This document shows, in pieces, positions 2,057-64,000 of a stretch of DNA of 64,000 nt. The translations under genes were made by a program, and so were the position numbers. Source of the DNA: Kudoa neothunni (lineage: Eukaryota; Animalia; Cnidaria); NCBI GenBank assembly GCA_964304625.1, contig OZ199838.1:7955350-8019349 (forward strand). Reading direction: 5' to 3'. The number at the start of each line of letters is the position of its first letter. Positions within the stretch are counted from its first letter, which is position 1. The notes under the pieces were generated by a model. It saw only the letters and a list, made by a program, of their open reading frames with translations, had not been told where the DNA came from and ran no database searches.

Positions 2057-2520
2057 AACTTTCTAAGGTTAAATATTTGCGATGTTTCAGGTGACTCAGA
2101 GTGTATAATTTCAGAGAAATTCGATTCGGCTAGATCGACTTCAACCAAGTAACCTAAAACAAAGAAAAATCATCTCTGCCGATTTAAGAGAACAAATGTG
2201 CAATTTTTGCTTAAATGGAAAAAATGATAGTTATATAGCTTCGGAAATGAAGTTACCGAGATCCACGGTTTGGTCGATATTGTCTAAGTTTAGAAACAAC
2301 GGCACTCTTGCTCCAAAACCTAGAGGGGAGACAAACGATCATTTCTTTCAATGGATCAGAAAGAAAATTCATTAATCTCTTAATAAGAACTAAAACAAAA
2401 CCTCCAGGACGAATTTGGAGTTACCGTTTCCCTTAGAACAGTCGACATGGTAATAGGAAAGTTCCATTACACTCTCAAGTCTGTTGTAAAAGTTCCTGAA
2501 AAAGGGGAATTGTTCTACAA

Positions 2521-5500
2521 CAGGGATCTCCAAATTACGGCCCCCGGACGTTTCCATAATGACGTGTAAAATTTAATTAATTAGTGTTACTTTGCAATTA
2601 AATGGTACACAACTCGCACAAAAATTGTCTTGCGTCAGATTCATAGTTAAGTTTTTCCTAATGACTGTTATTGTTATTTATAAATTAAATCATAAACATT
2701 GAAAAGTTTGCATTCTCGATACTCGTATAGTAATATTACCCTTTATTCGTATTACAAATTGTTGTGTACAGATTCAACAATATTGGAATACCCGGGAGCG
2801 ATCGGTGATATCGATTCCTAGAACCTTTAGATGATGAATTCTCGAGATGACGAATGGCAGATAAAGGGCATGTTGGTTTTACACCTCATGGTAATAATGG
2901 ATAAATGACATATACAAATCATCAACAACATACACCACGAAGAAACGATATTACCGAGACCTCCACCGAACGCGCAGCCGATGCGATCCCCGCTAATAAT
3001 AATAATCCTCGTCAAATTAGTATTTAACCCATAATTAGTTACTATACATCATTGTCTTTTCTTACATTGCCCATCTTTCTGCGCACCTCTGGATATACAA
3101 CACAAATATCACAATAGTTAAAGATATATTTATAAAAAATCGTAATTTTGTCGGAAAACTTTCAAATGTTAATTCAAATACAGAATCTTTTATTGGTTAA
3201 ATAATTGTTTAATGACACGTGTAACAATCAGGGTCTTTAATCATTCTCTTCGATTTATCGTGTGAAAAGGGCAGATTATGGAAGAAAGAAAATTCGACCA
3301 TGAGTGTCGAATGTTTAACGATAAGTGGAATACAGAGTAATTTTTTATTAAATTGGGTAACAAAGTAATATGTGCTATTTGTGACAACACTATCGCAGTG
3401 CTGAAAGAATTTACTATTCGCAGACATTACGAGACAAAACATTGGCCGGAGTATTCAAAATACATTGGAGTTGTTCGTACGGAGAAGTTCAGAACATTAA
3501 AAAATAATTTGTTGTCGAGGCACTTTAATGTTCAAAAAAATTGCCCATGAAAATGCAGCGGCCACAAGAGCTAGTTTTTATGTGGCCTATCTATTAGCCC
3601 AAGAAAGGGAATTCATTTACTGATGGTGAAACTTTCAAGGACGCTCAAACTCCAAAGGAAGTGTTGAATGAAGTATGTCCGGAAAAAGCCAGCTCATTTT
3701 CTGAGATAAGTCTTTCGGTAAACACAATACGTCGTAGAGTGGAGAACATTGGTGAAAATATTATTTCGCAATTACGAGATCAAATAGAGGAATTTGTGTG
3801 CTTTTCTATCGCATTGGATGAATCCACTGATATTTTAAACACCTCTCAACTTTTATGTTTCATTAATGGGGTAAATATCAAGATGAAAGTTACAGAGGAA
3901 CTCCTCCCCGTACATAGGTACATAGCATGCATGGAACTACAAGGGGTCTCGATCTATTTAACGGGATTGAAAGGTTATTCCAAAATTTCAACGTAAACTA
4001 GAATAAACTTATATACGTCATCACTGATGGGGGTAGAAAAATGAGTGGAAGAACAAAAGGATTAGTTGGACAAATATATAAAGCGGTCGAAAACACCGGT
4101 GGACAAAACCTCTGGCGCTTCAATGTATTATTCATCAACAAGCTCTCCGTGGAAAGAATATGGGCTTGTCATCAGTATTAAATCCCGTTGTCTCCACTGT
4201 TAATTTTATCCGGTCACATGGACTCCATCATAGACAATTTTAAGAATTTTTAAAAGATTCAAATGCGGAAAACTCGGATTTGCCATATGGCACAAATATG
4301 AGGTGCCTTAGCCGTGGGAAGGTTTAAAGTCGATTCTTTGACTTAGGACCGGCAGAAATTGAGTTTTTACTTACTGAACATAATAATCTTCGAAATTAGT
4401 TAAAAAATGATGATTGGCTCTGGAAATTGGCTTTTTTCCAGATTTGAGAGTACATCTGCGATTTTAATCTCAAATTACAAGGCGAAACATTGTTAATAAA
4501 CAATGTTTGTTCATTAGTGAAAGCGTTTCGACAGAAATTGATTTTATTTAATTCACAATTAAATAATAGTTGTTTCACTCATTTTTCACGTTGTGAAAAA
4601 TACGCCCAACAAAGTAAAGTATCTTTACCAATTGTTGTCACCCAAGACACTCTTTCCGATTTAATGCAGCAGTTTGATGGGCATTTCAACGATATTGAGA
4701 CATTTCCCTCGAATATTTTAATATTCGAAATTCCCGTTGGATGTCACATCGACCAATTACCTGCGGAATTGCAAATGGAATTCATTGACCTTCAAACAAA
4801 TGAAATACACAAACGTAAATACAGTGAGTTATGGGTCGTACGTAATATCGCAATAAAACATAAATTAATAACCTTTTGATAATTTAATTTTTACTATCTA
4901 AACTTTATTAAAAAAGTAACATATTGTATAAATTGGACTTTAGAAAACTTAAAATATCAACAGTTTTTATGCATTTAATGTGTTGCGCGCAATTATGGCT
5001 CGTACGTAACGATTTTTTTGAAAAGCGAGGAAGATTATAGGTCGTGCGTCGATGGCTAACAAAAAGAAATTTCTAACTCTTTCGAAAAAAGTAGAAATTA
5101 TCAAACACTACGAAAAGATATCGAATAAACCAAACGCCAAATTGGAAACAATGAAGGCCTTCGACGTAAGAGCAAGATCTACCTTGAATACTATCATAAA
5201 CAATAAAGACAAGTTGCTTAAGCACTATAACACGGTTCTGTTTCCAAATTAAGAAAAACTCTTAAGAAAGGAGAACATATAGATACCGATCATCGAGTGA
5301 AAAATATAGAACTTTCTCAAGAAGTTATCATCAATAAAGCCAATGAATTCCTCGATGATGCCTCAAAGGAAACACCTTTGTCTACTGACTGGTTTTATGG
5401 CTTTATAAAAAGATTTAATATCTCTCGTAATACATTTTTCGGTGAATCTAAAAGTGTAAACAATATTGTCATCGAGGAATGGAAAACCAATTTGAGCGAA

Positions 5501-57881: not shown

Positions 57882-59762
57882 TAGTAAGGTCTCGATATTG
57901 TGTGGTTTTAATGGAATTTTCCACGCAATACCGAGCCGGCGCACGCGCAACACGCGAAAAATATTAATTTTTAACAAAAAAAGTCATCTATTTTTTAAAC
58001 TTATCCCTACTTTTAATAATTTTATATATTTCGTCCATTATGGGATGAGTAAAGCTTAAAGCAGCAGCAGGATCCTCCCACATAGAAATTTTTCCGATAA
58101 TATTATCACATTTTTTAATTCAGCCGAGCCAACTATTTCATTATTTTTATCAAAACCGGGGTCTTAATCGCATTTTGAAAAAATCGAAATATATTTATCG
58201 ACTTGATGTGATACGTCCTCATGCACGGTTTCAGCGTCCTCCAATTCATTTACATCGTCAAAGTCGTCTAGGGATTTATTTGAAACAAACTTACCTGAAA
58301 AACATATTTACCTACAATTATTGTTTCAGGTGTAGAGTCGACATCTGCATTAGTATCCTCTTTATTTTATATTAACGTTAATTGATTAGTTAATCACACG
58401 ATTTCTGAATATCTGAGATTTCTTGAAACAGTTTTCAATATTTTTTCTCTACCATGTCCCATGCTTCATTCAACGTATGAAAATAATCCATAATCGTGTA
58501 TTTGAAGGGTGTTGAAGTATCCTCATCGGGCAGAAACTTTCTGGTCAACAATTTGCGGTAGTTTACCTTCAAACTATGAATGATGCCGAGATCCATTGGC
58601 TGGAGGATACTGGTGGTGTTTTTAGGTAGGAACAACAATTCAATGTTATTAAAGTGATTTGTTAAATTGGGATGACACGGGCATTGATCAAGGGGGATAA
58701 GGACTTTTCTATTTTCTTGACTGAATTTGTTATCTAAATTTTTTAGAATTTCTAAAAATAGAGCCGTGGATATCCAACCATTTTTTGGGACTAATCGTTT
58801 ACTAGGAGTTCTTTGACCCCATTAAAACAATGCGGCTCCTTAAATTTTCCCATCACGTAAAGTGTAAATTTCTCGCCGGTATATGAAGCAGTACCCAATA
58901 TAATTACTCTTTTTTTTTGATTGTATTGTCCCTCTTTACCAAATTCGTGCTTGGTGACATACTTTCGCTAAAGTATTACTCGTAGAAAAGGGGGCTTCAT
59001 CCATATTTATATCTTCCCGTTTATACTTACCAAGAATATTTGAATTATTGTTTATCCATTGGGGGATCGCACCTACATCAGCACTTCCGGCCTCTCCATG
59101 TAATCTGATATTTGTCCAACAATACCTTGTCTTGAAATTAGAGAACCAACCATTCCTAAAATTAAGATCGTAAATTTTACTATCTTCAGCTATTTTTGCA
59201 GTCTTTTCGTAAATAATAAATCCATGAATATTTTTCTTCTTTTCTCTCTGAAGAACAATCCAGTTGAATAATAGACTTTCAAGCTCAACATATTTCCCGT
59301 TTTTTATTCTAATACGACTATCAGGAAAATTCGAATCGCCGATTTCGCTTTCCTTAGATAACATTCTATCCAACGAAGAATAGCCTCTGTTTATTTAATA
59401 ATGATTAGAAATTAATGCTTATTAGACAGGTTAAATTTCTTTATTGTTAAAGCTTTGGCCCTAGGAATCGATCCTAGTGATGTATAATACAATATTATTC
59501 CTCGTTTATCCTTAATGCTTCTCTGACACCTAACCATTTCAACTTCTGTAACACTTCAAAAGGCGGATTAATCGGATTATTTGATGTAAAAAAGCCACGC
59601 AATAGCAAGACCCTCGATTTTCACTGATCTTATATATATATATATATATAAATATGAAAACATATTATATTAATCATATAACAACATTTCAGCCAATTAA
59701 TTGTACAATGTGAATTAAACAAGACTACGAATTGAAAACCACGCTATATGGAGACCTTACTG
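57882..59762 (-). mobile_element. pogo/Tigger transposon, decayed
   Basis: 28-bp TIRs (C/T)AGTAAGGTCTC(C/G)ATAT.., TA TSD; CENP-B HTH GWFSNFKTRY, LHGEAGSAD, FLPKNTTSILQPMDLGII. Confidence 0.9.
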
Positions 59763-59945
59763 TAGTTTACTTTCTTTTAATATAACCCAATTTTCTATGT
59801 AAAAGCCTTTTTAATGGGTAAGTTTGCCAAGGAATCTTAGTTTTATATTCAAGGCATCCCCGTCTTTACATAGCTAATTTATTTTGTTTAGCGATGAAAA
59901 GTACAAAATTAGGGATTTGTTGACCATAAAAAGCAATTAAAATAT

Positions 59946-62900
59946 TGTGACGTCATCATAGATAATTAGTAGTCGTAATTAGCCACTTTTGAGTTAGAAT
60001 TCCAATCATCCAATAGTAATTGTGTTTTTTCCATGATTTGAAACACATTCGCCTCACCGAATAGTTTTACATGAACTTTCAAATGTTCCGACAGGATAAA
60101 CATGACTTTTTGTCCCAGAAAAAATTCGAATTCCTCTGCGGTCGCCTGTGGCCGCGCCATCTTGAAGAGTGAAAAGATCCTCTGGTAATAATCTTGGACT
60201 GCTTCTTTCGGCTTTATGGAGGCTTGCGAAAAATCGTGCAAAAATGACTCCTTACTCTTGAGACCTCTTGAATACTGCAATATGCTCTCGTTAAGAATAG
60301 TAATCATTTGGGTTGACGATAGGACCACGCTTTCATTATGTTGGTTCGGTTTGAAATATTCACGCATGTGACAAGGGATTGCCAGGAGTGTTGAAGCGTA
60401 TAGCTGTTTCTCATCCCAACCTTTTGCAACTGCTTGCAGTTGGAGCTCTTCTGTTGTTCGACGTTCTCGTTAAAATTTATCGTCATAGATGCTGTGAATC
60501 CCACCTCTGACACCATTGTGGCGCGAACGAGGAGGCAGAATTAAGGCAGTGGCTATTACCACGGGAATCAATTTCTCTGCAATTGTTATCTCTATTAAAT
60601 AACTAATTTAACATTACTATTATTTATATTTTTCTCTACTAAATTATGAAAAATAAAGAAATTTGAGATGGTTGTAAATTTATGTAAAATAGACGGTCAG
60701 AAACATAAATGTTAGCGAATTTAATAGACCAAAACAATATTAACGTTGAATTATTTATAAATAATAATCATTTCTAAATTTATTGCTTTGAACCATGCAG
60801 TATAAAACATAACTCCGCGTGTTTCACGAGTTTGGTTGAACTACAATGAGTGATTCAAATTCAGACAATTTTCATGTTGGAATGAAATTTGAAACTTTTG
60901 AAAGTTTAAAAATTTTATATTCAAGAGTATGAGAAAAGTCATTTTGTGAATTTAAAGATTCGAGATTCAAGAAGAATTGATTCAGTGCAAAAACCGGGTT
61001 AATCGAAATATTAAAACACACTAGTGTATTACGAAATAACTTACGTATGTTACTTTGGAGCCCATTACCGAAATAGAGGTAAAGGCGAACGCACAAAAAT
61101 TCCCTTAAGAGAGATTGCCCATTTAGAGTTACATTAAGAGTAAGTGTAGATGGAAATTTCCTGGAGATTAGATCTTCTAACACTGTCCATAACCATCCAA
61201 ACGATCAATGGATCTATGAAAACTTACCCAGTCAGAGGAAATTAAACCAATGTGATGGCTATTTGTCAGAGCTTCTTTCTCTCGGAGCAAACAAAAAGCT
61301 CATACAAGCCAAGATAAATGACGAGACAGACAAGAAAATACCTTTGAAAGCTATCCACAACATTAAAAAATCCTCTTAAGTCGGAACTGATGACATTACT
61401 TTAGTTTTAGAAATTTTAAAGAATCAATACAACTGCATGGTGAGCGTTTTATCAGATGATAATAAAAATGTTTGTGGAATCTTTTTTTATGGATAAGCAG
61501 ATGCTCAACACAATTCATTTCTTTCCAGGGTTACTCATGCTTGATGCAACCTATAAACTGCTAGACTCGCGGTAATCTTAGGAGGTTTTCTCTATTTCGT
61601 TGCTGTATTAGTTCATTAGTGCGCCATTGCATCTGTCTGTTGCAGAAGACTCGGTTGGTGAAACCCACATAACTAGCGGCTGCATCTTGTACGATGAAAC
61701 GGCGGAGTCAATTAAATGGTATATTTCTCAACTAATAAAAATGATGCCGAACATGACTCAAAATGTCCGAACGATCATTACTGACAAGCACCACACTCTA
61801 AGGAAGTGGTTGAAAGAATTATTTCCAAATTCCAATCTAATGATCTGCATATTTCATGTTTCTCAAAGTTTCAGACGTGAAATAACTATGTCGAAATACG
61901 GTATCACTCGAGAGAAAAGGGACCAATTGCTTGAAATTCTTAATAAAATTATCTATTCGAAAAATAAACATGAATTCGATAAACTATGCAATAATCTTTT
62001 TCAACAAAGCAACGATAAGTTTATTAACTATTTTAAATCCAATTGGGAACCAATCGCTGATGAATGGGTCATAGGATTAAGTGAAACACATCATTTCTAT
62101 GAAAACTTGACCAATAATAGATTAGAAGCCATTAATGGCCAATTAAAACAAACAATAAAGAAATTTTCAAATCTTAATGATTTTTTCCGTTATTTCTTTG
62201 ACGCTCTCAAATCAATGAGAATAGAAAGGAAATACAATATAACCAAAATATTACTGAATTCAGTTAATTTTGATACCTCAAATGAAGTTCTAAACGCGTA
62301 TTTTAATCATTTAAATCCATTTGCCTTCAATATAATCCACAAATAAATTCAAAATTTTAACGAAAACACGAATACAGATAGTTTAACTACATCCATGAGA
62401 TGTAATTGTTATATTTACAGATCGTACCTCCTTCCATGTAGTCGTATTTTTAAAAAGAGAGCGTTTAACCTGCTTCCAATGTTCGATTCAAATCGATACC
62501 ATCCTAGATAGTCAAAAGATTACATGAGCCAATTCTTGGAAATTGGAACTATAAATATCACTCCAAATAAGAGAATTTCAATAAAGCCCAAAGGAATTTT
62601 TAATTATTATGGAAAAAACTTAAAAAACTCTGTGATTTACACAAATAAGCTAGCAGCTTTGTCCGCTGAATATTGTGGGGAGTTTTATGATAGTTGCCTA
62701 TCACTATTCAACACAATAGAAAAAAATAATCAAGAACCACGACATCAAACTAATAAAACAAATAAATCAATTAGGTATTTTAAGAAAACTTAATTTTTCT
62801 TGATTTATTTTTAGGAAATCGCACCATTGAATACTCTGAGGCTATAGCCGAAGATGAAGATATCTCTGAAGGAAGAGGTATATGACGCTTAACTTGAATA

Positions 62901-63900
62901 TTTTACTCGTATCTAACTTACAAAAAATAGATGTTATTGAGAATATTTTTAATTCTCAAATAATTGTTGAGGGTGTTGGTAATAATATTGTTCCGCAAGG
63001 TGAGGAGATTATCGAGAATATTATTGTTAATAATATTTCAAATGAAAATGCTCCCGAGCTCCAAATTGTTTTATCTAAAGATCAATTAGCACCTACTTTA
63101 AATATGATCGAGCTTGATGGTACTTTCATTTCCTTTCTTTTTTTAAATTATTTTAGCCTTAAAAATTCCCTCTCGAGTGAAGTCTGTTGGGAGACCAAGG
63201 GGATACGCTTTAACCACTATTGGATACAACAAAAAAACTAAATTTTCTTAGATCTCTCATTATTTATTTGACTAGGATAGCCATTGTTCATCGTGTTATA
63301 TTCATCTAATTTCTGAAAAATGGCCTAATTATGGTTAGTTTTCTCAAATTTCTTGTCTATATTGAAATCTAAAGCGGAAAATTCACATCATTTCTGTGAA
63401 ATATAATGAGCATATCTTATCTTGAAGTTCATAATTTATGAATAGAATACAATAAATCACATAATTTAAACATTGTAAATATTGGAAATAAATTAAATAA
63501 CACGAGGTTGAACGTATCATGTGGAAGCGCGCGCTTCAAGAGTAATGTCAGACCTACAAAATCACACCAAATTCTTTAACTTTAACCTTATTATTGACAC
63601 AAAATGATATAATACAATTTTGATCATGTATTAAATTAAGATTAATAAATCTTTCATTTAATTATGGAAAGCGATCAATGAAATAAACAATATAAATATG
63701 TAAAAAAAGATATTCTCAATTGTTACCTAATTCTATAATTTAGTAGAGAAAAACATAAATAATAGTAATGTTAAATTAGTTATTTAATAGAGATACTAAT
63801 TGTAGAGAAATTGATTCCCGTGGTAATAGCTACCACCCAGAATTAATAGACAACAATAATGAGGGTATGACGACTACTAATTATCTATGATGACGTCACA
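59946..63900 (-). mobile_element. Gypsy-derived LTR+PBS+truncated gag unit bounded by 31-bp inverted termini and a 5-bp TSD; its LTR is split by a MULE
   Basis: TGTGACGTCATCATAGATAATTAGTAGTCGT (59946-59976) is the exact reverse complement of 63870-63900; AATAT on both flanks; PBS TGGTGTCAGAGGTGGGAT at 60515-60498; gag fragments 59966-60516 align with the Gypsy gag at 27509-28261. Confidence 0.85.
60545..63837 (+). mobile_element. MULE/Mutator transposon with a ZSWIM3-like transposase (frameshifted, intron-containing)
   Basis: ~80-bp TIRs GGCAGTGGCTATTACCACGGGAATC; perfect 9-bp TSD CAGAATTAA (60536-60544 and 63838-63846); CPF...HNHP, MLDATYKL, IITDK, ICIFHV, TNNRLEAINGQLK, SWIM-like CNC...LPC. 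Confidence 0.93.
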
Positions 63901-64000
63901 AATATAAAAGTGTTTCATTTCAAAAAACATATAATTACTTATTATAGAATAGTTACCAAGACAATCAGTTAAGTGAACAATTTTTATTTTAACGAAACAT

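Follow-up and report, generated by a model that had tools for sequence, protein, structure and literature searches.

Close to the right-hand end of a 64,000-nucleotide stretch of the Kudoa neothunni genome (assembly GCA_964304625.1, contig OZ199838.1, positions 7,955,350 to 8,019,349; hereafter the window) lies a short insertion derived from a Ty3/Gypsy retrotransposon, which starts with a long terminal repeat (LTR) and ends with an inverted copy of the first bases of that same LTR. The window is AT-rich eukaryotic DNA of ~32% GC, and it comes from a 40-Mb assembly with four contigs of 11-17 Mb, to which all genome-wide searches reported here refer. The insertion is interrupted by a MULE DNA transposon on the plus strand (60545-63837), bounded by the two copies of a 9-bp duplication, CAGAATTAA, at 60536-60544 and 63838-63846. 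When the MULE and one copy of its duplication are excised (60545-63846) exactly 653 bp are left, and this unit reads on the minus strand as an 82-bp LTR, one spacer A, a tRNA primer-binding site (PBS; TGGTGTCAGAGGTGGGAT), ~540 bp of gag, and then the start of the LTR in antisense. The MULE splits the LTR into bases 1-54 (63847-63900, starting TGTGACGTCA on the minus strand) and bases 55-82 (60517-60544, ending ...CACA), the last 9 bp of the latter forming one of the two MULE duplication copies. Rejoined, the LTR runs TGTGACG...GCCACA and shares 92-94% identity with each of the six further LTR copies that the genome holds; in all of these the target site used by the MULE is uninterrupted.

The two ends of the unit form a perfect inverted repeat. 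Positions 59946-59976, which hold LTR bases 1-31 in antisense on the minus strand, are complementary to 63870-63900 at 31 of 31 positions, and the extended arms measure 35 nt at 97% identity (34 of 35). A perfect inverted match of 31 bp cannot be explained by chance. The inverted copy terminates exactly at LTR base 1, the same base at which all other LTRs of the family start, and directly outside both arms stands the pentamer AATAT (59941-59945 and 63901-63905). For a direct match of 5 bp at 32% GC we estimate a chance probability of ~0.002-0.005, and duplications of 5 bp are found at other members of the family too. We considered whether the left boundary and its flank had been duplicated in inverted orientation and rejected this, because the flanks are direct (AATAT / AATAT) and not inverted. 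Within the unit, 17 of the 18 bases of the PBS (60498-60515, minus strand) are complementary to the 3' end, with its CCA, of a tRNA-Leu(CAG) encoded at G000:C1:1916410-1916494. We found in the unit no polypurine tract (PPT), 3' R-U5, direct 3' LTR, pol or integrase gene, and its far end consists of antisense LTR bases 34 to 1.

The coding part of the unit (59977-60516, minus strand) is the 5' portion of a gag gene that stops ~90 bp short of two CCHC knuckles present in a full-length relative on another contig (the C3 element, described below). The unit and the C3 element share 93.5% identity over LTR, PBS and gag, and the unit's gag DNA is likewise 93.5% identical to the gag of that gag-protease-reverse transcriptase-RNase H-integrase element. 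A Pfam search of the gag fragment gave no recognizable gag hit, and the identification as gag is based instead on alignment and homology to the C3 element, on the position upstream of the knuckles in the relative's domain order, on the open reading frames (ORFs), and on language-model (Atlas) neighbors, which are Retrotrans_gag clusters. The start ATG of gag is made of the spacer A after the LTR and the first two bases of the PBS (60514-60516 in the window; L018:7235-7237 in the C3 element), and the PBS must therefore be translated in this family. Near 60443 the unit carries a 4-bp deletion relative to both of its relatives, such that the frame opened by the gag start codon ends after 70 codons.

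The initial annotation of this locus had read from the letters a ~653-bp unit left after removal of the MULE and one duplication copy, an 82-bp TG...CA LTR, a tRNA primer-binding site, a Gypsy gag truncated before its zinc knuckle, a perfect inverted copy of the first 31 bp of the LTR, and a perfect flanking AATAT duplication. All of these readings hold, the last by direct reading at both flanks, and the inverted copy probably extends a little further than the annotation had supposed, to base 34. The same annotation held that the inverted copy supplies the gag stop codon (YDY*). Its position is right, as the stop of the last ORF (59966-59968) does fall inside the inverted segment, but since gag is frameshifted upstream this stop is incidental and carries no functional meaning.

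The unit derives from a "micro-LTR" Ty3/Gypsy family of low copy number, which we defined by searching the whole assembly with the unit, with its closest relative and with the LTR alone (queries of 599, 3871 and 101 bp). The family amounts to about seven loci in 40 Mb, including one 3.87-kb element, one partial copy and four solo LTRs. The 3.87-kb element, at C3:6466447-6470317 (L018:3448-7318), has 83-bp LTRs, a 5-bp duplication (AACCA), a purine-rich, PPT-like tract upstream of its 3' LTR, and Pfam domains in Gypsy order (zf-CCHC, RVP, RVT_1, RT_RNaseH_2, Integrase_H2C2, rve). It is the closest full-length relative of the unit, and its coding region is broken into six ORF pieces. The partial copy, on C2, is older (82-84% identity) and 3'-truncated, and when checked it contained neither a second LTR nor an inverted LTR piece. 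Duplications in the family are 5 bp long and varied, with ATGAT and TCGCT at two solo LTRs in addition to AACCA, and therefore the AATAT of the unit has the right length and is not explained by one preferred target site. A DIRS-like origin, which would involve a tyrosine recombinase and leave no duplication, was rejected: the family encodes a DDE integrase (rve) and the unit has its 5-bp duplication.

If the unit belonged to a mobile family, one might expect its characteristic junction, gag fused to antisense LTR, to recur. In the searches with all three queries this junction occurs at one locus in the assembly, and a 24-base junction pattern allowing up to 3 mismatches matches only the window. 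The 31-base terminus is found elsewhere in the genome only as the start of ordinary LTRs, and no other inverted partial LTR was found in the genome. These results bear on a non-autonomous family with LTR-derived terminal inverted repeats (TIRs), moved as DNA by a Gypsy or Ginger-like integrase. Such a family would account for TGT...ACA at both ends and for the 5-bp duplication, and oppositely oriented LTRs have indeed been proposed as the route to the TIRs of Ginger transposons (PMC2836005). But the junction is single-copy even with 3 mismatches in 24 bases, there is no second inverted partial LTR, the unit has no integrase gene and a frameshifted gag, its arms of 31-34 bp are shorter than Ginger TIRs, and Ginger duplications are 4 bp except in TDD-4/5. 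We regard a mobile family as scarcely credible, and the undescribed family bridging LTR elements and Ginger-like TIR transposons, one of two options offered by the initial annotation, falls with it. The label "LTR/TIR hybrid" under which the locus was first filed describes its shape well but overstates what the element is.

Instead, we think that an aberrant cDNA of the micro-LTR Ty3/Gypsy family was inserted here once and was dead on arrival, a reading to which we give a probability of about 0.6. It corresponds to the other option of the initial annotation, a fold-back or template-switch cDNA with two U3 ends, and it draws support from the single copy, the end at base 1, the 5-bp duplication and a microhomology of 8-9 in 11 bases at the junction. 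The anatomy of the unit, its family, its single copy, this microhomology and the family-typical length of the duplication are direct observations.

The junction itself is informative. In an alignment with the copies on C3 and C2, the unit tracks gag to ...GGCTAATTA and then follows antisense LTR down to base 1; the crossover zone (59977-59979, AAT on the plus strand) can be read either as LTR bases 32-34 or as gag, according to the alignment with the two copies and the comparison of LTRs. LTR base 32 is an A in all six other LTR copies and in the inverted copy and a C only in the unit's own LTR, and it is therefore simplest to suppose that the inverted copy spans bases 1-34 and that the C is a private change; on this comparison the inverted copy probably reaches base 34. 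The crossover zone lies within an 11-base patch in which antisense LTR (ATTACGACTAC) matches C3 gag (GTTATGACAAC) at 8 of 11 positions, or at 9 of 11 if the parental gag had the A that both the unit and the C2 copy show (gag ATTATGACAAC or GTTATGACAAC). Among all pairs of LTR and internal 11-mers of the C3 element, matches of 8/11 make up 0.2% (p ~0.002) and matches of 9/11 make up 0.02% (p ~0.0002), a rarity which argues that the junction was guided by homology. A different crossover register, using the unit's own C at base 32, was tried and rejected, as the junction that it predicts exceeds the actual one by 3 bases. Autointegration was rejected as well: it predicts LTR base 1 joined to gag, when in fact gag is joined to base 34, and base 1 abuts host DNA.

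How might such a molecule arise? We infer a strand switch that preceded integration, and use of the two U3 ends by the integrase. During reverse transcription a growing DNA strand would switch template across strands, at the short stretch of resemblance between gag and the antisense start of the LTR. Two routes could lead to the same product. Either a plus strand elongating in gag jumps to plus-sense U3 and runs off at its natural 5' end, LTR base 1, or nascent strong-stop DNA, 34 bases in, jumps to plus-sense gag and copies back to the 5' LTR. Both would give a 653-bp duplex made of LTR, PBS, partial gag, and antisense U3 bases 34 to 1. The bottom strand of the unit has plus-sense U3 bases 1-34 followed by antisense gag, just as a switch between templates of opposite sense would produce it, and the precise terminus at LTR base 1 would follow because plus-strand strong-stop DNA has its natural 5' end at this base, where copying runs off. 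Both ends of such a duplex would read ...GTCACA-3', and the element's integrase could process them and join them to cuts staggered by 5 bp, giving the AATAT duplication. Afterwards the insertion would have lost 4 bp in gag, gained the C at LTR base 32 and received the MULE. Having no PPT, no 3' R-U5 and no pol, it could not replicate further.

That an integrase would accept two U3 ends is plausible on several grounds. The two normal ends of the family already resemble each other when read inwards (TGTGAC... and TGTGGC/TGTAAC...), and the exact end at base 1 together with direct flanking repeats is the signature of end-joining by integrase. In Ty1, integrase inserts any linear DNA with TG...CA ends, making 5-bp duplications (Friedl et al. 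2010, PMC2939329). As terminal TG...CA is sufficient in that system, a substrate with U3 at both ends is plausible, although the Ty1 work was experimental, with overexpressed integrase and PCR fragments, and the unit is a natural insertion of Gypsy type. For the integration of aberrant cDNAs there is a precedent in grasses, where template-switch products of LTR elements have been found integrated whole and flanked by normal duplications (PMC1950507).

The same two ends could in principle stem from two independent insertions lying head to head, if base 34 of one LTR had become joined to the other's gag through a later deletion and the outer AATAT copies matched by chance. A genomic deletion would fit the microhomology at the junction, and AT-rich flanks raise the odds that an AT-only 5-mer would match. 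However, with about seven family loci in 40 Mb, two within a few kb are improbable; a 5/5 match has p ~0.002-0.005, and no fixed target is evident from the family's remaining duplications (ATGAT, TCGCT, AACCA); and for the inverted piece to finish precisely at base 1 would be a further coincidence, making three in all. We consider this history very improbable. An assembly artefact, in which a chimeric or fold-back read created the junction, seems to us more improbable still: it would suit a junction that is seen in assembly sequence alone, but it would not stop the inverted piece exactly at LTR base 1, it would not yield a matching 5-bp direct repeat of the family's length, and the contigs are 11-17 Mb long.

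A closer competitor to the integration of a ready-made 653-bp cDNA is a larger cDNA with inverted ends, for example a snap-back, near-palindromic dimer (LTR-gag-...-gag(rc)-LTR(rc)), which would have integrated through its two U3 ends and been trimmed later. Trimming would have been a microhomology-mediated chromosomal deletion in an unstable palindrome, reaching from gag as far as the right-hand LTR's base 34. This account predicts the same ends and the same 5-bp duplication, and end-joining repair suits the junction microhomology equally well. But it needs two events where the template switch needs one, a second arm would have left no trace past 34 bases, and no such dimer is found elsewhere in the family. 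We judge it unlikely.

Several points weigh against our preferred reading, the one-off insertion of a template-switched cDNA. A strand switch cannot be told apart from a post-integration deletion in a larger inverted-ended cDNA, and the 9/11 microhomology depends on an assumed base in the parental gag, with the C3 sequence itself giving 8/11. The junction at 59976/59977 is known from assembly sequence alone. Clean duplications are absent at two of the four solo LTRs, and the assembly holds no intact integrase source for the family. Finally, searches of the genome with up to 500 bp of flank on either side found no paralogous empty site, because the 180 bp to the left and the 100 bp to the right adjoining the unit are unique in the assembly; the right flank was covered over these 100 bp, ahead of 200 bases past the end of the window that read as N (G000:C1:8019350-8019549). 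The empty AATAT site that the initial annotation had proposed to look for is missing from the assembly.

In the literature that we searched, no direct precedent was found for an LTR element that ends in an inverted LTR piece and is flanked by a duplication. Studies of the 1980s on the DNA of defective avian retroviruses are reported to have described strand-switched forms, which may be a lead. The nearest cases are perhaps the complex insertions of Sabot and Schulman 2007 (PMC1950507), in which, as proposed here, the aberrant product of one round of reverse transcription was integrated whole with one family-typical 5-bp duplication. Those insertions are LTR-internal-LTR-internal-LTR concatenates, with all parts direct, and are longer than a normal element. 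The unit, by contrast, is truncated to 653 bp, its far end is the antisense start of U3, and the switch would have occurred between strands of opposite sense; a third, internal direct LTR between two internal regions is absent from its truncated, inverted architecture.

Compared with ordinary micro-LTR Gypsy elements, represented by the C3 element and by a sister family with 79-bp LTRs, the unit shares the tRNA-Leu PBS, the start codon overlapping the PBS, and the 5-bp duplication, and it lacks the CCHC knuckles, protease, reverse transcriptase, RNase H, integrase, PPT and direct 3' LTR. As a derived fragment it shows the marks of Ty3/Gypsy in its family-shared TG...CA LTR, its tRNA PBS and a duplication within the 4-6 bp range; the gag-protease-reverse transcriptase-RNase H-integrase order is seen in the C3 relative and not in the unit, which is also without a PPT and direct 3' LTR. 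Another group of short elements with an LTR and a PBS, non-autonomous LTR retrotransposons, comprises TR-GAG, which has gag only, and the non-coding TRIM and LARD. All of them carry a PPT and a pair of direct LTRs and multiply by reverse transcription, and in this they differ from the unit, which has neither a direct 3' LTR nor a PPT and is single-copy.

In the transposons Ginger1 and Ginger2 (TDD), too, the inverted TGT... termini resemble the ends of Gypsy LTRs, and the duplications of TDD-4/5 are 5 bp (PMC2836005). Ginger elements encode a transposase like the Gypsy integrase, have no reverse transcriptase or RNase H, and form multi-copy families; their TIRs are about 40-270 bp long in Ginger1 and 50-180 bp in Ginger2, and their duplications are 4 bp (CCGG/CCGT) in Ginger1 and 4 bp within RTATAY in Ginger2, with 5 bp only in TDD-4/5 (PMC2836005). 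The unit differs in having no integrase, relatives that carry reverse transcriptase and RNase H, arms of 31 bp perfect (34-35 at most), and one locus. Its 5-bp AATAT has the length of the Gypsy family's own duplications, a length which within Ginger is shared by TDD only.

Why might a single dead insertion matter? What the locus preserves, as a fossil at the molecular level, is a rare accident of replication; it does not represent a new class of element, and its biological effect on the genome is probably nil because it is a single, non-functional insertion. If it arose as we propose, however, it would be a base-precise natural record of a microhomology-guided template switch across strands, an event usually seen only in experiments, and likewise a natural record of an integrase accepting DNA whose two ends carry one and the same U3 terminus. 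It would also provide a concrete example of LTR ends turning into terminal inverted repeats, the step by which, in the proposal of Bao, Kapitonov and Jurka (2010, PMC2836005), Ginger arose from oppositely oriented LTRs. It is tempting to go further and see in the unit a snapshot of the first step from an LTR retroelement to a TIR element, with the same U3 terminus inverted at both ends and inserted by integrase, but we hold this to be a very long shot. If it were true, and if U3/U3 molecules recur in micro-LTR Gypsy elements, one that included the integrase gene would be a proto-Ginger, and the U3/U3 route would be simpler than the two-element accident proposed in PMC2836005. There is also a practical side: software that finds TIR elements and MITEs will label this locus as a TIR element, and it will escape programs that search for LTRs.

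The MULE nested in the unit spans 3293 bp, with 99-nt TIRs at 95% identity, Pfam hits to MULE (5e-11) and Transposase_mut, and a degenerate transposase. Near-full-length copies of this MULE number at least 25 genome-wide, at 91-96% identity, and a ~100% identical copy lies 11 kb downstream in opposite orientation (G000:C1:8030143-8033423). This pairing suggests very recent, local transposition of the MULE, which would then be active still, even though the transposase ORF is broken in the nested copy. The near-identity of the two copies would thus make the MULE insertion recent, and the 6.5% divergence of the unit from the C3 element, with its decay, indicates that the unit itself is not. The C3 element in turn lies within a MULE of the same family, its flanks matching MULE positions about 1384-2197 and 2191-3286 at 87%, and therefore Gypsy and MULE have each inserted into the other.

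The sister micro-LTR Gypsy family has 3979-bp copies (3.98 kb) that are ~99% identical to each other and carry 79-bp LTRs. One of them, L029:1085-5122 (G000:C2:9058584-9062621), has identical 79-bp LTRs and the duplication AGTAT, and its integrase gene holds a 59-bp insert (L029 about 4025-4083) that its ~99% identical siblings L031 and L032 do not have. The insert consists of the last ~45 bases of the LTR followed by the first 13 bases of the PBS (R-U5-PBS-like), with GGGAT microhomology at its bounds, and from this composition it looks like an integrated strand-transfer error of strong-stop DNA; read so, it would indicate that elements of this group do have aberrant strand transfers integrated and fixed, in favor of our reading of the unit. 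At L026 (G000:C3:6314009-6314023) 15 bases match the complement of the tRNA-Leu-like PBS exactly; this site, for which ARAGORN called no tRNA, may be the PBS of another retroelement or part of a tRNA-derived short interspersed element. Lastly, a repeat of ~320 bp at window positions 59446-59765, 180 bp to the left of the unit, is dispersed in the genome in at least 15 copies at 80-92% identity.

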